A stretch of 63,688 nucleotides of DNA, the filler included, from Octopus bimaculoides (lineage: Eukaryota), in the NCBI RefSeq assembly GCF_001194135.2. It is 7 parts of 7 records of this genome, joined end to end, with 100 filler letters (N's around TTAATTAATTAA, not from the genome) between each part and the next. Parts side by side here need not be neighbours in the genome. Positions count along the whole stretch, not along the records: positions 15,374 to 30,641 come from NC_069007.1; 6 more parts are not named here. One strand, 5' to 3'. The position numbers were made by a program, and so were the translations under genes. Positions 15,374 to 30,641 of this stretch are shown here, piece by piece. Positions within the stretch are counted from its first letter, which is position 1. Each line of letters begins with the position of its first letter. The notes under the pieces were generated by a model. That model had not been told where the DNA came from and made no database searches. It was given only the letters and a program-made list of their open reading frames with translations.

Positions 15374-16474
15374 TGTATATATATATATATATATATATAT
15401 ATCACATGCATTCACGGAACACATGCATACTCACATGCGTGCACGTACATTCACATACATACGCTCATACATCACGTGACTCAACAAAACAAACAACGTG
15501 TCATTATATGCATTTCTTAGGAGTTGGGTATATAATTTAATAACAGCTTGAATGAGCTTCATACAACTTTAAAAGTCCTAGACTCGTTGGCCGAACCTTT
15601 CTCTTGTGCTATTTAGAGTAGCATAAAGAGATTTGAGACAACATGCAGTTGGCTACCAGATGTTAGGCCTGTATTGGTCAACTCAGGTCACGTGGTGTCT
15701 TTTACTCTAATGTCTAGCAGCCATCTTGAATTCATATTTAAACACCTATATATGAACATGAATTTTATATATGACAAATACGCTAGCTTAAAATGTACAT
15801 AGATTTAGGCTTAGACATATTTTCGAGGTGAATTTTCCGATTCCTCTCCATCCCCGTTCGCCAGCGAGCATTTTCTTTTTTTTTTTTTTTCGTTTTCGTT
15901 CACTACATGCTGTTTTACATCTATTACACTATTTTCCCCGCTCCANNNNNNNNNNNNNNNNNNNNNNNNNNNNNNNNNNNNNNNNNNNNNNNNNNNNNNN
16001 NNNNNNNNNNNNNNNNNNNNNNNNNNNNNNNNNNNNNNNNNNNNNNNNNNNNNNNNNNNNNNNNNNNNNNNNNNNNNNNNNNNNNNNNNNNNNNNNNNNN
16101 NNNNNNNNNNNNNNNNNNNNNNNNNNNNNNNNNNNNNNNNNNNNNNNNNNNNNNNNNNNNNNNNNNNNNNNNNNNNNNNNNNNNNNNNNNNNNNNNNNNN
16201 NNNNNNNNNNNNNNNNNNNNNNNNNNNNNNNNNNNNNNNNNNNNNNNNNNNNNNNNNNNNNNNNNNNNNNNNNNNNNNNNNNNNNNNNNNNNNNNNNNNN
16301 NNNNNNNNNNNNNNNNNNNNNNNNNNNNNNNNNNNNNNNNNNNNNNNNNNNNNNNNNNNNNNNNNNNNNNNNNNNNNNNNNNNNNNNNNNNNNNNNNNNN
16401 NNNNNNNNNNNNNNNNNNNTTTTTTTTTTTTTTTTTCGTTTTCGTTCACTACATGCTGTTTTACATCTATTACA

Positions 16475-16512
16475 CTATTTTCCCCGCTCCATTTTTTTGC
16501 CCGGATTAGAAA
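16475..16512 (-). CDS. Candidate gene A exon 2 (VSNPGKKMERGK-stop as assembled)
   Basis: The nearest acceptor, CTCCAG| at 16513, gives a 107-nt intron. One fewer A in the A7 run (16492-16498) would open the longer WSGENS..KKKKRK..KYV frame ending at 15811. Confidence 0.35.
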
Positions 16513-16619
16513 CTGGAGTTTAACCAGATTCGGATATATTTACATACAGAAAAGATAGAATTAACTAACGTGATTATGTCATATATTATTAACTTCAAAG
16601 TGTTTGTATCTAAACTCAC

Positions 16620-16818
16620 CTTCTCTATCTGTGGCAGCAGATCGATTCAGATCGGATCCCTCTGATGTCGCTGTCACCGAGGGAATCTCTATGTCGTCAT
16701 CTGGTGCATCTTCATCTGTTTTGGGTTTCTTTAAACACGGGCATATAGATTCAAGAATTCGCTTGGCTCCTGCACACAGACGTGCGAGGAAGCCTTGGTC
16801 GTTAACGTTAGCTGTCAT
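16620..16818 (-). CDS. Gene A exon 1, uncharacterised small protein (paralog of gene B)
   Basis: MTANVNDQGFLARLCAGAKRILESICPCLKKPKTDEDAPDDDIEIPSVTATSEGSDLNRSAATDRE, with aaaATG start context, ending GAAG|GTGAGT (phase 1). 36 of the first 45 aa are identical to gene B. Confidence 0.8.
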
Positions 16819-16955
16819 TTTCCAATAAATAAAAACAATAATTAGTAAATTTATGATCGCAAATGAATGAATCGCAAGAGTAACCTACAAGAAGTTATCG
16901 TCAAACAAGCTGCAAAAGTCGCAATGGATTTTCTCGTTTCTCTCAAGCTGTTATC

Positions 16956-16965
16956 ATGACGTCAT
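16956..16965. promoter_or_regulatory. Perfect CRE palindrome ATGACGTCAT upstream of gene A
   Basis: About 140 nt upstream of the A start codon, inside the block duplicated with gene B. Confidence 0.6.
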
Positions 16966-18657
16966 CATCATAATAAACCGTCTAAGGTCAGGTGTCCATT
17001 GAAAATATAATTTAAACGTTGAAGTTGCACAATCGTCAGCGCATTGGCTAATATGCCTAGCTACGTTTTTTTGTTTCTCTTTCCTTACGTTCTGAGTTCC
17101 AGTCCGGAACATGTTAATTTAGTTTCTGTTTTTTTTTTAGGGTCGATAAAATAAATTTAAATGTCAAGTACTGGAGTCGATGTATCCTTCTTTCCTTTCT
17201 CCTCAGAAATACTTGTCTTGTAGAGACAAAATACCGTTTTAACAACTGAATCATAAAGGATTTGTATGCGTGTCCTTCAATAAATGACACACAAACACAC
17301 ATGCGTGCTGTAAGTTCTGAGTTTCGATTCTTCCGAGGTTGACCTTGCCTTTTATCCTTTCGGGGGTCAATAAAATAAGTACCAGTTGAATACTGGGGGG
17401 GGGTCAAGGATATTGTGGACCTTGTGCCGAAATAAATAAATACCAGTTGTCCGCTGGGGGTCGATGTAATCGACTTACCCGCTCATTAAAATTACTGGCC
17501 CAGACCAAAACTTGTCGGATATTTCTTGTGTGTAACTTCGTTTAAGCTGTTGGTTTGGCAAAGGACCACAGTCATCTTCTTCTGCCTCTTGTAAAGATTT
17601 TACATTTTTCCTCACGAGGAGCCGCACTGTTCTCTTGCAGCAAGAAAACATTAGAAGATTACATTTGTTTTGTGCTGAATTCGCCTAGACTTTAGTTCGA
17701 CGGATAACATGCATAGCAGCATATATTTTCGTTTGTTATAATCTGAGTTCAAATTCCGCCGAAGATGACTTTGCCTTTCATGCTTTCGTGTCGGTTATAT
17801 AAATACTAATCGAGAGGTGAGGGTCGATGTATTCCAATTACACCATTTAAAATTACTGACCTGGTCACAACATTAAATGTAATAATATTTTAAACGTTCA
17901 ATAAGGTCATACAAGTTTTTTTGGTTATTCTACAACAGTGTACATGAAAGTTCTGCGTTTGAGAATACTTGTTTATCGGAAAATATTTCTAGCCACATTA
18001 ATTCTTCCTTGCCCTTTATATAAGTATATATGCGTTCGGAGTACATTTGATGGTAGTTTGAGATCGATATATCTGCTACTTGGAAAGCGTTATGGTGTGG
18101 GCTACATTGGATTTCTGATACAGCTTTCTTAACCTATGACAGTTCAATGACCACGCGTATTCAATCACTAAAGGAGGAATGAATGAAATCCAGACGTTTT
18201 TGAGTTTAAGATGGGTTTTGATGGAAGAATCGTTGTATCAAAATCCATCCGTCCTTTGATTTGATTTCTTCATACTGTCCAGTAGTGGAACTTCCCGTTC
18301 GTTTGAAAAATAGGTAATTGGTTAATATACTATGACATGGTAATCTTGAAGAAGTTAATCACAGACCAGATATGCGAGCGACCAATTTTCTTCGGTGGTT
18401 TGTGCAAAATGGATTAGGGTGCAACTGTATTGTGATACGCACATGTCCCAAAATATTTTACATCGAAGAGAAACAGCATCAAAGTTCAACATATCGTTCC
18501 CGTTCTCAAATACCATCACGGTACACTGTTGTGAGCCGCTAACACTCACCACTAAGCCACGCACCTTCACAAGTTTAAATGATACCTGAACTAAAGACAT
18601 ATCGTATTTAAAATTAGTCTTTATTGCCATATAGCCTAAGCTTTTATAATCCCTCAG

Positions 18658-18812
18658 CTAGAATATACTTTAAGAAGGACTATCCAATGCATGAATCCCC
18701 AGTTCGATACATCACGCATGAGCAAAACCTTGAAGAAAGCTGCATAGGAATGTTTAGCTTAGACGAACCAGCTAAATGCACTGAATCACCCGAATCAACT
18801 AAATGCACATAA
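18658..18812 (+). CDS. Orphan phase-1 terminal exon candidate D (family-related module)
   Basis: CCCTCAG|CT then ARIYFKKDYPMHESPVRYITHEQNLEESCIGMFSLDEPAKCTESPESTKCT-stop. RYITHE matches the exon C repeats and GMFS matches gene B exon 2. Confidence 0.5.
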
Positions 18813-19007
18813 ATGCTACATCAAAGGACATTAGCGGACTTAACCAACGGAAATATGTACTGGATTGGAATCTAATGTGAATTTAATGAGTGTAATAATA
18901 TAATAAACAAATTTTAACGATGTATAAATTCTCCATTGTTCTTTATGATGCCTTGTGTATTCTGTATGATGTGTCGAAAACAGTGAAACAAAGTCGGGAT
19001 TTACATA

Positions 19008-19235
19008 GGCGTAGGACTGGCCGTGTGGTAAGTGGGTTGCTTACGAACCACATGGGTCCGGGTTCAGTCCCACTGCGTGGCACCTTGGGCAAGTGTTTTT
19101 TACTATAGCCTCGGGCCGACCAAAGACTTGTGAGTGGATTTAGTTAACGGAAATTGAAAGAAACCCGTCGTAACTATATATNNNNNNNNNNNNNNNNNNN
19201 NNNNNNNNNNNNNNNNNNNNNNNNNNNNNNNNNNN

Positions 19236-19285
<50 letters not shown>

Positions 19286-19340
19286 GGGGGTCCGTGTTTG
19301 TCCCCCCAAATCGTTTGACAACCGATGCTGGTGTGTTTGT
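19008..19340 (+). mobile_element. tRNA-derived SINE with internal (TA)n microsatellite
   Basis: Head GGCGTAGGA..GTGTGGTAAG..GGTTCAGTCCC recurs throughout the window. Head and tail keep the same orientation across the 19182-19235 gap. Confidence 0.8.
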
Positions 19341-19972
19341 ATTCAATGCAGGTGCAATCGAAATTTGTGAACAAATGTGTGTCGCAGTGTATGTGAATGT
19401 ATGCCTGTTTGTGTGAGTGCACGTGTGTTTGTTTATTTATTCTATTGTATGTGAATGCCTTTGAATAAAAGGTATTGTATGTATCGTGTGCTATTCATTT
19501 CGGATATTAATATGATATTTTTCGCACATGGACTGTAATTTTGAGGAGACAACGGGTCGATAACATCAAAAACACAGACTTCAAATTACTGTGGAGCGTG
19601 GCTGAGCACCCTATTTCTTCAGGGGTGTGTTACGCATTGTCCCATCCCCGTTCAGCTTCTACTGCTTGCGCCCCCATTTTTCATTTTCCTTCTCTTCTAT
19701 TTTTGTTTCTGTGAATTTAAATGTTATAATTTAATAAACGATAGAATAAGACAAGAAACAAAAAGAAACAAAAAGAAACGAATTGCAAAAGCTACATTAT
19801 TTTTACGACTATGAAAAGATGGAATGCAAACACAGGCTTGATTTGAACCCAGAATTTAATGAATCAGAGAAAGACCGCTAAACAGTTTGTGACACGCGCT
19901 AGTCATTGTGCTATCTCGACGATCTTATATCACTTATTATTGATACGTGATCTTGCGATGTTGAATACCATC

Positions 19973-19982
19973 ATGACGTCAT
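19973..19982. promoter_or_regulatory. Perfect CRE palindrome ATGACGTCAT upstream of gene B
   Basis: About 150 nt upstream of the B start codon, at the position homologous to the gene A CRE. Confidence 0.6.
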
Positions 19983-20129
19983 AATAAATTGAGAAAAAGA
20001 ACGAAAAATCTGTTTACAATATTCCATTGCGATTTTAACAGTTTGTTTGACGATAACTTCTTGTACGTTACTCTTGCGATTAATTCATTTGCGTTAATAT
20101 ATTTACTAATTATTTTTATTTATTGAAAA

Positions 20130-20343
20130 ATGACAGCTACTGTCGACAACCAGGGTTTCCTCGCACGTCTGCGTGCAGGAGCCAAGCGAATAATTGAAGC
20201 CATATGCCCGTGTTTAAAGAAACCAAAAACAGATGAAGATTCACCAGAAGACGACATAGATATTACACCACCGATATCAACAGAATGTTCCTCAACTGCA
20301 ACAACAGAAAAATCCGTAAATCTGAATCAGTCTGCTACCGAAG
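20130..20343 (+). CDS. Gene B exon 1, uncharacterised protein (paralog of gene A)
   Basis: MTATVDNQGFLARLRAGAKRIIEAICPCLKKPKTDEDSPEDDIDITPPISTECSSTATTEKSVNLNQSATE, ending GAAG|GTGAGT (phase 1). It is 15 nt longer than exon 1A with the frame preserved. Confidence 0.82.
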
Positions 20344-20765
20344 GTGAGTTGTTGATGAAATTACTTTGAGGTTTTACATAACACGTAAGACCTTTAGATA
20401 ATTATGTCTCCTCTACACATATATGCATCTAATTTCTTCATATACAAAAATCCAATTTTATACACACATTTATATAAATTCAAGCTGTTTGCGAAAAACA
20501 CCACGTGATGTGAGTTCACCAATTGGGGACTAACTAGTAGCCGTCTTGAATGATTTCCCAAATCACTTTATTAATTTCTGGATAATTCAGGAGATAGGAT
20601 AGTCCGGCGTGCTAACGTTTCTGCCAGCTCACCGCCTGGCGAGCTAACGTTTCTGTCGCCTTGTACGTATATATGTATGCATGTATGTATGTATGTATGT
20701 ATGTATGAATGTATGTATGTATGTATTGACAGGTTAAATATTACCATTTATTTTTACATTTTCAG

Positions 20766-20828
20766 GGATGTTTTCAGTACCTGTTACTGTCCATACATCA
20801 GAGATATTTGTGCAAAGATATCCTGACG
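20766..20828 (+). CDS. Gene B exon 2 (63 nt, phase 1-1)
   Basis: TTTTCAG| acceptor, |GTAAGT donor, open in the frame set by exon 1: GMFSVPVTVHTSEIFVQRYPD. Confidence 0.75.
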
Positions 20829-21019
20829 GTAAGTAGTGGCACTTATCATTTTCATTTGTTTTTTTGTCTTTTGCTAGTACTCCAAATTATAGCAATATTC
20901 ACATTTGTCGATTTATACACACTCATGTATGTATGAATGTATATTTTCATCTGCATGCATTAGAGTATATTTATACACACACAGATATATATGTATATAT
21001 ATACCCTTCTTATTTTCAG

Positions 21020-21082
21020 TCTCATCCTCTGCGGAACCCACAGCCAGCGACACTCATTTTGCAGTACAACATTTTACTGGCA
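21020..21082 (+). CDS. Gene B exon 3 (63 nt, phase 1-1)
   Basis: TATTTTCAG| acceptor, |GTAAGT donor, open in frame: VSSSAEPTASDTHFAVQHFTG. Confidence 0.75.
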
Positions 21083-21387
21083 GTAAGTGTTTGTTAATAT
21101 ATTCACACACGTTTTTCATTAATAGCTCCGTCGTGTACATCAGAAGCAGTGCAGAATGCCCCCACACGCATAATTATACTGATATATATATATATATTAT
21201 ATGCACATATATGTAGTTACATAATATATGTGTGAATGTATATAGATACATATTTACAGTCATTAATGTATATAAATATGTATATATGGGTGTGCATATA
21301 TGTATATACATATATTTATATAAATATGCATATATATTGTACATATGAGTATCTCTCTCTCTCTGTCTCTTACCGTCGATCTCTTGG

Positions 21388-21442
<55 letters not shown>

Positions 21443-22275
21443 NNNNNNNNNNNNNNNNNNNNNNNNNNNNNNNNNNNNNNNNNNNNNNNNNNNNNNNNNN
21501 NNNNNNNNNNNNNNNNNNNNNNNNNNNNNNNNNNNNNNNNNNNNNNNNNNNNNNNNNNNNNNNNNNNNNNNNNNNNNNNNNNNNNNNNNNNNNNNNNNNN
21601 NNNNNNNNNNNNNNNNNNNNNNNNNNNNNNNNNNNNNNNNNNNNNNNNNATACATACATACATACATATCGTGTTTGCTTCAAATTCAGATAATTTATTT
21701 GTTTAATTCCGTTTGTTTTGTTGGGTTCATAACATTTGGTCTGCGATAAATATTTACACCGAGTTGTGATTCCCCCCCCCCCATTTCTTGTCTTTTCACC
21801 CTTTCAAACATTATCGGAATTTAATAAATGCTTCTGTTCTGAATTAAGTACGATGACTAAGAAATTTCAGACACAGCATCTTCATGCAAGATGGTATCAA
21901 TCAACCATTGCTCGTTCAGTAATCTAATTATATTAGGTATTTATTGACAGAATATTACGATATTGATTATCGAAAACAGATTTCACTCGCCATTTACAGC
22001 TTATTCATGCTTGGACATGATATGCGTGTATATATATTTATGTATATATTTGTGTGTGTGTATATATTTATGTATACATTCATGCTTGGATGTATGTGTG
22101 ACTGTATATATATATGACTTCATGTTTTTATAATAAATTTTAAATGCTTTCTCAATGCCTTTCTCAACATAATTATTGCATGTTTGTTTGTTTGTTTATA
22201 TTTATGTCAAATTATCTTCATTGTGCTTTGTTTTTCGTTCAATTTCCAGCTCATTTTTCCGATGCCGAAGAAATA

Positions 22276-22342
<67 letters not shown>

Positions 22343-23899
22343 CTAAAAATTAACTTACAAATGCAAGTGTTCCCCGGTTTCAAGCGCCACACTTCATGCT
22401 TGTAATTTTCTGGGTCATACATATAACAATCTCTCTCTNNNNNNNNNNNNNNNNNNNNNNNNNNNNNNNNNNNNNNNNNNNNNNNNNNNNNNNNNNNNNN
22501 NNNNNNNNNNNNNNNNNNNNNNNNNNNNNNNNNNNNNNNNNNNNNNNNNNNNNNNNNNNNNNNNNNNNNNNNNNNNNNNNNNNNNNNNNNNNNNNNNNNN
22601 NNNNNNNNNNNNNNNNNNNNNNNNNNNNNNNNNNNNNNNNNNNNNNNNNNNNNNNNNNNNNNNNNNNNNNNNNNNNNNNNNNNNNNNNNNNNNNNNNNNN
22701 NNNNNNNNNNNNNNNNNNNNNNNNNNNNNNNNNNNNNNNNNNNNNNNNNNNNNNNNNNNNNNNNNNNNNNNNNNNNNNNNNNNNNNNNNNNNNNNNNNNA
22801 ATGCATCGACTCTAAAGTTTATAGAGCCCTCACTGACATTCCCCCGCGTTGGGTGCCAGATATGCGAAGCCTATCCTTGTTTTTTGCTAAAGTTGAAGAC
22901 GCATATCGTAAAGCAAAAATCATGGAGTTAGTGTGCAACGATGATAAAAAATAAATATTTACATCTTAGACATTTGTGAACATCACTCATGAATAAAAAA
23001 TAATAATTTTAAATTCTCCCTTCATTTTTATTTCATCGACGGAATCGTTATCTAGTACTTGGAAAATGTATATTGGAGAAATTGTCCTTAAAAATATGCA
23101 TTATTATGAACTCGCTTAAAAGCTGTACCCGTTGTGGACTTCCAAATTAGCTGCTGCGGAGGGCAAGTTGGGCCTATGGTCCAAAATAATGATTATCTAA
23201 ATAGCATGACTATAATATGTCTATAACGCCTATATGCTCAGGTAGTGTTTCATCAGAGGTTAAGGTTGAATAAGAGTTAATTCCGTAATGCAATCATTCT
23301 GTTGGTCCAGTCCCTATATGAATTCAAACCGTTGGCTAATTAATCCCAAAGTTCTTATTTCGACGTAAAATTAACGAAACGAATGTCATTTATCTCCCCT
23401 TCATCTTTGACGTCATCTGACAAACATCAGCCGAGATGGCGTTTATCAGCCTATCTTTACCTGCTAGAAATAGCAACCCAAATGCTTTAAAATCAAACCT
23501 CAATGCTGGATGTTCAAGAAATAAATGAAGGACAGATTTTCAATCCCAGGATCATCCTGATTCCAAAATGGTATAATATGTCTATGTAGAGCAAATGTAG
23601 ACTGAGATACAGGGGTCCCAGACAGAGAGAATATCACGTTTATTATTATAGACGTTAGGAGATAAAAATAACAAGGATTTGTCAGTAAGTTATAATATAC
23701 TTCGTCATGCGGCTGTTGTTAAGAATCTTGCTTCCCAACCATGCAAAACTGGGTTTATCTCTATGGTACGCTCGCTTGGACAAGTGGCTTCTTCTACAGC
23801 CACGACAAGAGCAAAACCTTGACAGACGGAAACAGATAGAAGCCTGTCATAATTCATATATGCATACATAAACACATGCGTACGTAGTACCAGTTGAGT

Positions 23900-24400
23900 A
23901 TCGGGGTCGATGTAGTCGACTTACTCCTTTCCCTTAAGAATTGCTTACTTTGTGACAAAATTTGGAACCGATTTTTTTGTCTTCGTTAAATCGGAGGACT
24001 AGCAGAATAGTTAGCACGGAAGCAAAATGCTTAGTGGTATTTCGTCTGTCTTTACGATCAGTGTTCAAATTCCATCGAGGTTTGCCTTTAACTTTCATTA
24101 TTTTGGGCTCGATAAAGTAAGTAGCAGTTGAGCATTGGAATCGACGTGTTCAACTCCTCCCTTGCCCACCCTAAAAAAAAAAAAAAATGCTTGCCTTATG
24201 GTAAAATTTGAAACCGATATTTTCGTCTTCGATTAGTGGGTTCCCTAGCAGAATCATCGGAAAGACGGCATTTCGTATGTCTTTACGTTCTGAGTTCAAA
24301 TTATGCCGAGGTCGACTTTGCCTTTCATCTTTTCTGCTTCGATAAAAAAAAGTACCAGTTGAATTCTAGGGTTCATCTGATCAACAAATCGACTGCCCAC
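23900..24400 (+). mobile_element. Cluster of truncated SINE copies (second family)
   Basis: Repeated GAAATGCTTAG.GGTATTTCGTC..TTTACGTTCTGAGTTCAAAT..GAGGTCGACTTTGCCTTTCATC blocks, also seen at ~17050-17870, 39130-39320, 55880-56070, 57150-57530 and 60840-61150. Confidence 0.75.
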
Positions 24401-25821
24401 TCACAGCAAACAAGCAGATGTGCTCGTACACGCTATACACATATATGTCACTCTGTGACTTTGCCTTGAATAAGAGTCTGTACTACAGCACTGCAATCAT
24501 CCCTGACATAATTTCACAAGGAACTGTATAGGAGTGCACGATTAATGCTAGCTTCTTTTTTCATGCAGATGAGTATATGAGTTACGATATGTTTTTCATT
24601 TTAATTCCATGGTAATTACATGACAAAACTTCTATGTTATTATTTGCCTTTATTGAATGATCATATGGTATTATAGACTCTATTGACTGAGACAATTACT
24701 CGGCCTTATTTTCGTTCCTTTGAAATATTACATAATTTCCTAGATTTCTACTTTTTTCCTCTTCAATCATGAAATATTCTTGTTACCATACTCCTTGCTG
24801 TGTCATATTAGTTAGGTTAGAGAAATGTCCACTATTTGCTATAATTAGCTATCATTATATACACTAATATTTTTATTGATATTTTTTTCCCTTTCTATAC
24901 GCATGCATAATGGATTAAGATGTGTCACCGGAAAGGAGTAAAGAAAAAAAAATCGCAGAAAATCGACAATGTCGTTATTGGCAAAAATGAAATGAAAACA
25001 ATCTAAGACGTTACAAAGAAAGGAAAATATGGTAAGAATAAAACCTGCCAATTTGAAAATCCTAACGTGAATGAAAACAATTTGTTCCTGCTAATGAAGA
25101 TGGTGTTGTGGAGATTATTCGAAAAATAAATAAAATTTCTAGAGAAGAGTAATTGGTGAGCACTAATGAAGATAATATTGCAGGGAAGTGATCGAGGTTT
25201 GTCTTTAAATTTTATTTGTTGCTTGTTCCATTCATTGGACAGCAGCCATGGTGAGGCACCGTCTTTCTTTTTAGTGGAAAAAAGAGAGTTGAAATCAGTA
25301 CTTAATTTATATTGTCTGGCACATGGTTTTCTTATACTCATTTAACGAATCGCTACGATACTGGGATGTAAATAAACCAACAATGGTAAACAAGCGCTGG
25401 CCAAGGCGGGGAAAGTGCAAACACAAATACATTCATATCATATTCTTTTACTCTTTTATTTCTTTTAGTCATTTGGCTGCGGCCATTCTGGAGCGCCGCC
25501 CTCAAAAATATATATGCGCATATACACATATGTACACACATATACATACTTACACACGTATATATATATATATATATNNNNNNNNNNNNNNNNNNNNNNN
25601 NNNNNNNNNNNNNNNNNNNNNNNNNNNNNNNNNNNNNNNNNNNNNNNNNNNNNNNNNNNNNNNNNNNNNNNNNNNNNNNNNNNNNNNNNNNNNNNNNNNN
25701 NNNNNNNNNNATATATGTATATATATATATATATATATATGTATACATATACAGGGAATAATTAAATGTATATATATACATATATATATATGTATATATA
25801 TATATACACACACACACACAC

Positions 25822-25891
<70 letters not shown>

Positions 25892-27389
25892 ATATATATG
25901 TAATCCAAACAACTCCAGTTCCGATTATTAGAATTAATAGATTATTGAATTTAGCTCCGACGAGTTGTAACTTACATACATATAGTTAGGACATAATTAC
26001 TTAGACTTAAAATAGGATTAATCATAATGAAAATTTGACTAAATCAAGGGGTAATGCATATGTATATTCCCGTCGAGGGTACAATGTGCTGCAAATCACC
26101 TTATGTCTCCTGGAGTATTGTATAACTTACGTTAAACCGTGTCATTCATACAAATTTACGTCTATATTGCAGATGTTCAAAGAAATCTTTAGTCACATTA
26201 GGTTACGTTTAAATGCAAATACATACTCCGAATCTTCTGTACAAGATCTTTTATGAGTATTTTGATTACTTAAGCATTTATATACAGCAGATCACCTCAC
26301 TTTTGAAACGGATATTTAGAACATATATCTTATTCTGATAATGTTTATTGAAAAGCTCTTCACTTACCAAAATGTTTTACAATTTTTCTCCAAAAAATAT
26401 GTTTGAGATTATTATTTGAGTTTCAGAATTGCTAATTGATTGATTTTTTTTATTTTTATTCTATCGAAATTAAAATATATTCCTCAAATACATTACAATT
26501 ACTTATCAACAAAACATAAATAACGGTATTGTTTTACTTAACAAAGACCATTTTTTTTAACAGGTCTTATCTCAGATTCCATTTATTCAAATTGAAACCC
26601 GAGAAATACAATGAAACCATGTATTCTATATATTTTCTAACATTCAAAAGAATATCGCTTCATATTGTTCAAGCAGCCATTCCATTTAATAGAGATTACC
26701 ATGTCACATTTAGATGCAGATCATCTGAGGCTGTTGGAGAAGCTGTTTCATGAGTACAGCTATTAGGCAAACATTTAAGCAAGTGTGGTTGGGTGTGGTA
26801 AGAAGTTTACTTCCCAGCCACATGGTTCCAGGTTCAGTCCCATTGTGTGGAACCTCCCGCAAGTGTCTTCTACTATAGCCGCAGGCCGCCCGAGGTCTCG
26901 CATATGGATTTGTAGAAAGAGAAGCTGGTGAAGCACGTTATATATGTATATCTATCTATCTATCTATCTATCTATACATATATATATATATANNNNNNNN
27001 NNNNNNNNNNNNNNNNNNNNNNNNNNNNNNNNNNNNNNNNNNNNNNNNNNNNNNNNNNNNNNNNNNNNNNNNNNNNNNNNNNNNNNNNNNNNNNNNNNNN
27101 NNNNNNNNNNNNNNNNNNNNNNNNNNNNNNNNNNNNNNNNNNNNNNNNNNNNNNNNNNNNNNNNNNNNNNNNNNNNNNNNNNNNNNNNNNNNNNNNNNNN
27201 NNNNNNNNNNNNNNNNNNNNNNNNNNNNNNNNNNNNNNNNNNNNNNNNNNNNNNNNNNNNNNNNNNNNNNNNNNNNNNNNNNNNNNNNNNNNNNNNNNNN
27301 NNNNNNNNNNNNNNNNNNNNNNNNNNNNNNNNNNNNNNNNNNNNNNNNNNNNNNNNNNNNNNNNNNNNNNNNNNNNNNNNNNNNNNNNN

Positions 27390-27437
<48 letters not shown>

Positions 27438-28137
27438 TGGGGGAGGGAGATAGATAGATAGATAGATAGAAAGATAGATAGATAGGTATACGTATATAAC
27501 GGGCTTCTTTATTTTTTATTCTTTCCTTCTTTCTATCAGCCCTTTCACGCTTACTTCGTTCATTCCACTCTACGTTCTTTCGTAACTTAGCGGGCCGGCA
27601 AAACACACCGATATTGCAAGTACCAGTGTTAAAAATAAGCACTGGGTCGGCATTTTTCGATTACAACCTCCAAAGATGTGTTCCAGCAAGGCCGCAGTCC
27701 AATGACTAAAACAAATAAAAGATGAAAAATAAAAGATGTATACATGTGAGAGATTGAGCGTGTGTGTGTGTGTGTGTGCTTGCGTGTGTAAGTGTGCATG
27801 TATGTGCGTGTGTTCTTGTTATTGTACTTGTTATTATAATTGTCGCCCTCCCATCGCTTGGTAATTACCATTGGTTTGTCTGTCTGTATTTGTCCCCAAC
27901 CATCATCACTTGACAACCTATGTTGGTGTTTACGTTCCCGTAACTTAGCGGTTCTGCAAAAGAAAAAACGATAGAATTAGCACTGGGGTCGATTTGCTCG
28001 ACTATAGGCGGAGCTCCATCATGGCCGCAGTCAAATGACTGAAACAAGTAAAGGAATAAAAGAATATAATCTTATTTATGAAACGTTTTGTTCAACCTAG
28101 CCATGACTTTTCATGAGCATAATGTTGTTTCAATGTA

Positions 28138-28264
28138 CAGGCTGTCCACAAAGTCTGGGTACATGGGGATTAGTACATACTTTAAGAAATTATTATTTCT
28201 TAAATTTAATTGTTTATATCATGATTTTATTTACTTCATGTACCCAGATTTTGTTGACACCCTG
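28138..28264. mobile_element. 127-bp Tc1/mariner-type MITE
   Basis: TA|CAGGCTGTCCACAAAGTCTGGGTACATG ... CATGTACCCAGATTTTGTTGACACCCTG|TA (imperfect TIRs, TA TSD). Confidence 0.85.
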
Positions 28265-30030
28265 TAGAGTACTGGATATTTCTACAGAAAATGTCTTACG
28301 AGTAGAGTGGTTAATTAACTATTGCTATAGCTGGTTTCACCTTACACAAGAGTGACAGCAACATTTCAAGTTGTCCATTGGCTCATGTCTTATGAGGAAT
28401 CATGGTGTTCCTGCATATTCTGAAATAGTGGCAATTCTCTCTAGACCAGCTGGGAAATGGTTATACATATTAATATTGCGGCACTGATCTATGTAAACAT
28501 CATCAAGCCTTGCAATGAATTAGCCGACTGGATCAGGATTATAATCCATTGTACAGGCTTGTTTTGTTCCCAAAGGGGAGACATATTTTGGGACATGATT
28601 GTCATGGATGTTGATAATAAACTGAATGCAGCAATTGTTATTTAAACAGCTTGATGTATCAAATATCAATAATTACGAAATGTTTATATAGGGAAGAAAT
28701 ATTATCACATGAGTACATTAAGAGCTCTCGGAGAGCGGTTAAAAAGGATAGCCCCAATGGGTTTAGAAAGAAGCGCTAGGAATTGATGCTGAATGGTGTC
28801 AAAGCTTCGTGAAACAAAGGGATGGCTCTTTGTGACGTGTGGTTCCATTTTCATATATTACTAAACCGATCTTCTAAAAATTCTGAAAAAAAAAGATGGC
28901 GAGTGTTAATTCAGTAAATAGGTAAATAATGAGCATTTTTAAAGCAGAAAATAATTGATTGCTGCAATGGTAAATATTATTGCAAAGTTATCCAGTGGAT
29001 TTCCTAAATATCTTTGACTCTCTTGGGAGCCTGGAACAAAGATTGTGTTATAATGCTTTTAAAAAAGCTTATGGCTCTTTGCAATAGAACAAGATCTCAT
29101 GAAGTGGGGGACATTATAGCTGAAGATGAAAATCATGCAAGAAGATGTCTAAGCTACATCATTCTGATGGCTAGAAAAACTGCGATCGTAGATATGCTCA
29201 CACAAGGCTGAGATGGTGCTAAATGCCCTCATCCTTAACGTTATCATCACCACCACCACCGCCACCACCACCACCGNNNNNNNNNNATCGCACTCACCAT
29301 ATTAGATGTCATCGTGTGTCAGCTCCATCTAATATGGTGAGTGCGATGGAATGTGTAAGATGGGAGAAACTATTACAAAGAGATGAAATTGTATGGGTTG
29401 AGGATAAAAGGCAGGATCCAGATATTGTAAAACCATGTACGGCATTCTCTCGCGGGAAGCTCAAAAAATTGTACATATATCGTAAATGGTTGCCTCTTAA
29501 ATATAACTCCGATATTGTAGTTTCCATAGGAACTGCAATATTGAATTATATTTCGTCCTCTTATATGTCTCGGACACAAACAGGAATTGAAGTCCTATGC
29601 CGTGAAATATTTCTTTACCACACTGTGTGTAATTTAGTAACCCGGGATATATAGACATTATGATTTTCTGAAACGGAAAGAAGACAAAGGAGATAATATT
29701 TCTTCACCCTTTCTTCGTATGCGTTCGTGTCTTTAGATTGCATAAGAATTTCATTTGTAAATTTTTGCTGATCACCGGTGCGTCTCGGAGTCAAAGCGCC
29801 ATAATATACCCCCTGATGTAAAAATAGTTTCTGGCACATGGAACTCAATTTGGTAAACTTAGCAATTTAGTTAACCGGTCTATATAGACAGTGTGAGTTT
29901 CCAGATGAAGAATATACGAACAGAATATATTTCCTTAACCCTATACACCTCGTTGATATTTACATTAATACTTATAATACTTATCTAAATCGGCAGTTGT
30001 TCTGCCAAACCAACTCTTCATAACTACGTG

Positions 30031-30284
30031 CTATTTATATTTGATCGGTGGATTTGATGACAATGATAAAGAATCTGGGACAGGTGATTCGCTATCGATC
30101 TTTGTCTCATAAGAAATGTATAGGAACTCTGCTGGAGATACTGTAGCAGGTGAACCAATATCGACCTTTTTCTTTTTCTCATGAGGAACGTATAAGAACT
30201 CTGTAACAGATTCTGAGGCAGGTGTTCTACTATTGATCTTTCTCTCGTAAGAAATGTATCGGAACTCAATTGTATATTCAGGGA
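30031..30284 (-). CDS. Candidate terminal exon C with three ~22-24 aa repeats (not in the ORF track)
   Basis: TAATCAG|TC (phase 1) then PEYTI-EFRYISYERKINSRTPASESVT-EFLYVPHEKKKKVDIGSPATVSPA-EFLYISYETKIDSESPVPDSLSLSSNPPIKYK-stop. Repeat periods of 66 and 72 nt are multiples of 3. Confidence 0.6.
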
Positions 30285-30641
30285 CTGATTACGCATGGAC
30301 ACTTTAGATACATAGATATATATCACGCAAGTTTTCTATGATCTTCTCTTTCTTACCCTGTGGCTTTCTCTCACTCTCCTTTTCACTTCCCCTCTATGTC
30401 TCTCTCACTCTCTCTATTCTCTCGCTCTCTGTCACTGTCTCTGTTTATATTAATGGGATTTTCACATCCTAAGACATTCACTCTGTATTAATTTGCTGTA
30501 CACTCCATTTCTCACTTTCATTAAGCCTTCCCTTTTCTCTCATATAATCTCTCTAACTCTCACTTTCATTTTTCTCCACCTCTCTCACTTGGTGGCTTTA
30601 CGGTTCTATAGCTCTCTCTGAAATGCATATATATATATATA

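Follow-up and report, generated by a model that had tools for sequence, protein, structure and literature searches.

Exons B and D, two 63-nt stretches within the 63,688-nt window of Octopus bimaculoides DNA (the whole stretch, filler included), are best explained as consecutive coding exons of a small O. bimaculoides gene on the plus strand, represented in UniProt by A0A0L8ID84, which belongs to an octopus-only family and whose linker is made of exons that can be removed in frame. We give this reading a probability of about 80%. The piece of the window in which the exons lie (15374-30641) is part of a draft scaffold, AT-rich, rich in microsatellites and interrupted by N gaps, and Rfam and tRNA scans of it returned no matches. 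An earlier note on this DNA had read the boundaries and phase of the two exons from the sequence alone, and they agree with the existing public gene model. B and D already stand in a public model; the family, represented by octopus records only, is undescribed.

Exon B (20766-20828, plus strand) and exon D (21020-21082, plus strand) are each 63 nt long and of phase 1-1, with a TTTTCAG acceptor and a GTAAGT donor, and encode (G)MFSVPVTVHTSEIFVQRYPD and (V)SSSAEPTASDTHFAVQHFTG, respectively. Their reading frame is open when the first two bases complete a codon (phase 1-1), and the claimed pair of equal, symmetric, open exons is recovered by direct reading. The TTTTCAG motif is found three times on the plus strand of the piece 15374-30641, all at B and D. 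Upstream of them lies exon 1, the constant N-terminal exon (20130-20343, plus strand; 214 nt from the ATG to GAAG, followed by the donor gtgagt), which encodes MTATVDNQGFLARLRAGAKRIIEAICPCLKKPK... and ends in phase 1, so that exon 1, B and D join in frame. Its protein sequence is 64-67% identical to that of exon 1 in O. sinensis and shows the N-terminal pattern of the family, M[TS]xxVxxxGFLARLRAGAKRIxEAIxPCxKK (tblastn E-values of 1e-24 to 2e-26 against P0003, P0004 and P0002). With exon 1, B and D joined as a query, A0A0L8ID84 (P0001, 157 residues, O. bimaculoides) was matched with 100% identity over 113 residues. This protein comes from the first assembly and is labelled uncharacterised; its residues 1-113 correspond to exon 1, B and D with the junctions proposed in the earlier note, which had placed the two exons on a constant anchor, and they are indeed coding exons downstream of exon 1. 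The last 44 residues (114-157, SKCLLIYSH...ICTYM) differ, and are the translation of the intron past the GTAAGT donor of D. It is on annotation and on comparison with relatives that the use of the B and D junctions in the gene is proposed here. For the two genes of the window (the second, on the minus strand, is described below), no NCBI protein was found in the collection: the plus-strand gene has the UniProt model only, and the minus-strand gene has none.

In seven of eight family genes, distant paralogs included, the ATG is preceded at a distance of 146-165 nt by a ATGACGTCAT palindrome, which contains the cAMP-response-element (CRE) core TGACGTCA. Within the window this palindrome is found at 19974-19981 (156 nt upstream of the ATG of the plus-strand gene) and at 16957-16964, and it is also present upstream of the ATGs in the loci L001, L002, L003, L005 and L008. 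Over the 200 nt upstream of the gene, the identity of O. bimaculoides to O. sinensis is 83%, compared with about 64% in intron 1.

Relatives of the gene amount to 16 proteins among 5.8 billion and 7 among 1.8 billion representatives, and every named one is from Octopus. No match to the family was found among Pfam and PDB sequences, and a search of the literature by accession and locus names gave no paper naming any of its loci; the family would thus appear to be uncharacterised, undescribed and limited to octopus records. Models were placed on their loci in order to map their exons, and boundaries were resolved for seven models, the introns of which are all of phase 1, with a typical layout of 199, 48, 48, 63, 63 and 179 nt. 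This is the layout of O. bimaculoides LOC106872864 (P0011). In O. sinensis, LOC118761726 (P0004) has internal exons of 48, 48, 63 and 63 nt (as read by eye, its last acceptor being outside the resolved set), and LOC118761728 (P0003) has exons of 199, 48 and 48 nt, followed by 63 nt and a donor read-through. The O. vulgaris hypothetical protein P0006 is encoded by exons of 199, 48, 48, 63 (D-like) and 179 nt, and O. vulgaris P0008 by exons of 211, 63, 63 and 71 nt. The isoforms X1 (P0012) and X2 (P0013) of O. bimaculoides LOC106880409 have exons of 229, 48, 60 and 158 nt, the 60-nt exon being absent from X2. B-like and D-like exons, with the consensus sequences DIFSAxATVHSSGMFxPxYTx and xSSSAETxAxDxHLAVQPFTG, respectively, are spliced consecutively in the RefSeq models XP_036355765.1 (O. 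sinensis) and LOC106872864 (O. bimaculoides), and B stands before D in all relatives having both (O. bimaculoides, O. sinensis and O. vulgaris).

P0011, P0004, P0003 and P0006 have in common with the plus-strand gene the N-terminal exon, the 63-nt phase 1-1 B-like and D-like exons in the same order, and a terminal exon opening with xFSDxEEI. The upstream CRE-like palindrome is shared by P0004, P0003 and P0006, but not by P0011. All four differ from the plus-strand gene in having two additional 48-nt exons between exon 1 and B and a complete terminal exon, and their protein identity to it is only 33-38% for B and 33-57% for D. No trace of the 48-nt exons was found by tblastn in the 422-nt intron 1 of the plus-strand gene or in the rest of the piece, and the alignment to O. 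sinensis skips from intron 1 directly to the region of B. Since they are also missing from P0008, the 48-nt exons do not define the family. The P0011 locus (L007) was considered as the window locus and rejected, as it is a paralog.

Some peculiarities of the public models were noted along the way. A0A0L8ID84 is not the only faulty one, as XP_036355767.1 (P0003) also ends in translated intron: at residues 120-122 (L001 13645-13655) it reads through the GTAAAT donor of its B-like exon (…NGKL*), while intact D-like and terminal exons stand downstream in the genome. The terminal exon of LOC118761726 opens with a 21-nt tandem duplicate (L002 16117-16160; CTCCCTTTTCCGATGCCGCCG and CTCCTTTTTCCGATGTCGAAG, encoding PFSDAAA and then PFSDVEE), the first copy of which is omitted from the RefSeq protein, yet the second copy has no preceding AG.

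Profile HMMs of the B and D modules were built from the other members of the family, with the window copies excluded, and searched against the 540 six-frame segments of the piece. The top matches were exon B for the B module (E = 0.0015) and exon D for the D module (E = 8e-6). Exon B aligns without gaps to its O. sinensis counterpart with 42 of 63 nt identical, and exon D does so with 35 of 63 (14, 13 and 8 of 21 at the first, second and third codon positions, respectively), the third positions of D being the most diverged between the two species. The 100-nt flanks of B and D, on the other hand, require 34-38 gap columns for an identity of 63-70%. The gap-free exons next to gapped flanks, together with the codon-position pattern of D, indicate that B and D are under coding constraint yet evolve fast. 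Their nucleotide identity between species (56-67%) is not above that of introns; identity alone fails to separate exon from intron, and the constraint is seen in the absence of indels and in the codon-position pattern only.

The relation between the two exons is less clear-cut than their identity. Judging from the counterparts that each of them has in relatives, B and D are old and distinct modules, and the exon duplication from which the earlier note derived them, in which both would be tandem copies of one ancestral 63-nt exon, is possible, with the odds somewhat against it. The two exons are adjacent and of equal length and phase in every relative having both, and the gapless matches on which the proposal was based (S4, T8, V16, Q17 and Y/F19) are present. 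Taken alone these matches are weak (shuffle P = 0.014 with BLOSUM scores and 0.07 with identity), and V16-Q17 is private to the window copy, being absent from other B exons of the family. The gapless similarity is stronger in O. sinensis (P = 0.0004-0.0006, compared with 0.014 in O. bimaculoides), but much of that signal comes from the F-S-A start (TTYTCTGCAG), which could have been retained for its role in splicing and not through common descent. The codons of the (I/F)-F-S-A start common to B and D form a pyrimidine run plus CAG that resembles a second acceptor and may be conserved for that reason; that both exon types begin with a pyrimidine run and AG is also an argument in favour of duplication. 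At the level of profiles, the true register scores highest among the 21 cyclic shifts (column-permutation P = 0.011), but a comparison of the B and D profiles with hhalign gave a probability of 0.06%, and the B HMM on D and the D HMM on B both scored at noise level. In the same way, the nucleotide identity of 35% exceeds the 25.5% obtained for permuted columns (P = 0.0016), while one out-of-register cyclic shift outscores the true register. A common origin of B and D by tandem exon duplication is thus only suggested by the sequences.

The reading of B and D as coding exons has also to be weighed against what is found at the two ends of the gene. The terminal exon starts at 22250 (22250-22275, plus strand, phase 1), where the acceptor ccag is followed by CTCATTTTTCCGATGCCGAAGAAAT, encoding T-HFSDAEEI, and the window sequence that includes this start (21650-22274) is 87% identical to the intron and terminal-exon start of O. 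vulgaris (L003 1516-879). It is here, and not in the read-through of A0A0L8ID84, that the correct next exon after D would begin. Of the family pattern for this exon, FSDxEEIPRGPFYEPLVLTDIFF...NGNITMNV, the gene shows the acceptor and the first 26 nt only (GAAGAAAT), which give way to a (TC)n(TA)n microsatellite ((TC)13(TA)20, at 22276-22341), followed by 97 unrelated nucleotides and a gap of 361 N (22439-22799). The conserved C-terminal domain is absent from the assembled gene, and neither blastn nor tblastn located the other 153 nt of this exon in the piece. As the gap could hold the missing 153 nt, and as sequence similar to the downstream flanks of the paralogs restarts at 22800-23060, a misassembly is plausible, and a misjoin in the draft assembly is no less likely than a true disruption of the exon.

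At the other end, the gene faces a paralog on the minus strand, arranged head-to-head, the exon 1 of which (16620-16818, minus strand, 199 nt) forms an inverted repeat with the 5' end of the plus-strand gene. The arms of the repeat (16684-16928 and 20023-20264) are 88-89% complementary over about 245 nt, and span the 5' UTR along with most of exon 1. The window from 16608 to 17143 is colinear with, and 85% identical to, the exon 1 region of the gene for O. vulgaris P0006, and synteny shows the minus-strand gene to be the counterpart of that gene. Neither exon 1 nor B nor D of the plus-strand gene was found at the orthologous place in O. vulgaris, which has the terminal exon only. A nearly identical pair of family genes, also head-to-head, is present in O. 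sinensis on another contig. The inverted repeat and the O. vulgaris synteny together indicate that the cluster is being reshaped by local inverted duplication.

Because O. vulgaris lacks exon 1, B and D at this place, the plus-strand copy may be a duplicate that is recent, incomplete or in decay. It could then be a pseudogene, or give a non-coding transcript, and B and D would be remnants without a functional protein. The inverted repeat, according to which the 5' end of the gene came from a local duplication, is in line with this, although the frames of exon 1, B and D are uninterrupted, and the splice sites are stronger than those of the annotated paralogs (GTAAGT, compared with GTTAGT, GTAATT and GTAAAT). 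Decay could account for the broken terminal exon, the remainder of which is missing from the piece, but the break abuts the draft gap, where there is room for it. The loss of both 48-nt exons could be explained in the same manner; however, O. vulgaris P0008 also lacks them and is still modelled as coding. We consider such decay unlikely, and the weight that we still give it comes from the local inverted duplication, the missing 48-nt exons, the lack of an NCBI protein and the terminal exon standing alone at the syntenic place in O. vulgaris. That B and D are mere chance open frames with splice-like ends is highly improbable, since only 0.02 such pairs are expected by chance per piece (from 300 simulations with a second-order Markov model of the piece, counting TTTTCAG followed by GTAAGT after 30-150 nt, in multiples of 3), the public gene model uses exactly their boundaries, RefSeq models of two species contain spliced homologous exons that agree with them in length and phase, and both exons are picked out by the module HMMs.

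With B and D taken as coding exons, the question arises of what they contribute to the protein. An AlphaFold model of P0011, based on a ten-sequence alignment of the family and of low confidence (pLDDT 44.6), shows a helix at residues 8-29, which is encoded by exon 1 and is basic before a Cys-Pro-Cys motif, and three strands at residues 157-192, encoded by the terminal exon. No confident structure is predicted for residues 37-158, which correspond to the 48-, 48-, 63- and 63-nt exons. In distant paralogs, too, it is the N- and C-terminal parts that are conserved, and it is on this conservation, together with the P0011 model, that B and D are read as pieces of a linker; given the pLDDT of 44.6, its disorder is something we infer. 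B and D would then probably each contribute 21 residues of acidic, Ser/Thr-rich, unstructured linker. According to this model, a protein of the family would consist of a conserved N-terminal helix with the Cys-Pro-Cys motif (exon 1) and a conserved, beta-rich C-terminal segment (last exon), with the acidic, Ser/Thr-rich stretch encoded by short exons, B and D among them, between these constant ends. As phase-1 introns are used throughout, internal exons could be gained, lost or skipped without a change of frame, and, going by the variation between paralogs, the length of the linker of the plus-strand gene may be tunable while both ends stay constant.

The removal of B or D without a frameshift, as claimed in the earlier note, holds by construction (63 nt and phase 1-1 for both), and any internal exon of the resolved models can drop out in frame, since all of them are of phase 1-1. 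The sets of internal exons do vary between paralogs, consisting of 48, 48, 63 and 63 nt, of 63 and 63 nt, or of 48 and 60 nt. For the variable-length isoforms proposed in the same note there is a precedent within the family, as isoform X2 of LOC106880409 (P0013) skips exactly the 60-nt equivalent of B; both isoforms are annotated, predicted models. This distant paralog resembles the plus-strand gene in having phase-1 introns throughout and, at the position of B, an exon that is skipped in frame and has DLFD(E)P(S/T)Y in common with the B exon of P0008. It differs in being a separate gene on another chromosome, without a D-like exon. By analogy, exon skipping is a reasonable possibility for the plus-strand gene. 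The model of O. vulgaris P0006 also leaves out an intact 63-nt B-like exon (L003 14405-14467), which has a TTTTCAG acceptor, a GTTAGT donor and an open frame encoding IFPAIATVHSSAMFIPRNTQ; GTTAGT also serves as this donor in P0011 of O. bimaculoides.

A finer adjustment of length might come from within the exons. A second TTTTCAG at 20771-20777 (plus strand), inside B, is a candidate alternative acceptor that would leave an in-frame exon of 51 nt (20778-20828). Across the family, most exons of the B and D types contain a similar in-frame pyrimidine run with an AG ending 12, 15 or 18 nt inside the exon (L002 14925-14942 and 15305-15321; L007 13020-13037 and 13367-13387; L003 14405-14422 and 14783-14799), and the use of these candidate inner acceptors would remove 4-6 residues. 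A broader proposal, which we regard as doubtful in its entirety, is that this octopus-restricted family, possibly driven by a CRE-type promoter, sets the length of its unstructured linker both by the inclusion or skipping of phase-1 mini-exons and by the in-frame second acceptor located 12-18 nt inside most of them, while head-to-head duplication keeps yielding copies with different sets of exons.

The architecture itself is of an ordinary, known kind, in which a variable linker is encoded by short symmetric exons. The PEVK exons of titin and the 54-nt exons of collagen are short symmetric exons of this type, which encode unstructured or repetitive segments and tune the length of the gene product. 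They resemble the exons described here in being of equal length and phase, in encoding one peptide module each and in being removable in frame, but they have no sequence relation to the family, which has only two to four modules that are barely alike. The middle part of the family's genes is made of short removable exons, the set of which changes from paralog to paralog and, for one of them, from one annotated isoform to the other. This makes the family a compact system in which to follow the growth and variation of lineage-specific genes through the gain, loss and skipping of exons.

A third module, exon C, had also been proposed, from an open reading frame at 30034-30288 on the minus strand containing PATVSPAEFLYISY (at about 30150). 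Its match to B is real (5 identities in 14 residues), but seven other stop-free 14-mers in the piece equal it. The module HMMs score this reading frame at noise level, and no homologs of it were found among 5.8 billion proteins or within the loci examined from O. sinensis and O. vulgaris. Exon C was rejected as a module and does not belong to the gene with B and D: its strand is the opposite one, it covers a 72-nt tandem repeat, and it matches B at chance level. Another repeat, dispersed or tandem, is located at 23886-24385 of the window and has many copies in the O. sinensis loci, for instance as units of about 184 nt at L001 3139-3923. The 72-nt repeat (30034-30335, minus strand) consists of two full copies, which are 74% identical, and partial copies, and is open in two minus-strand frames of 85 and 103 codons.
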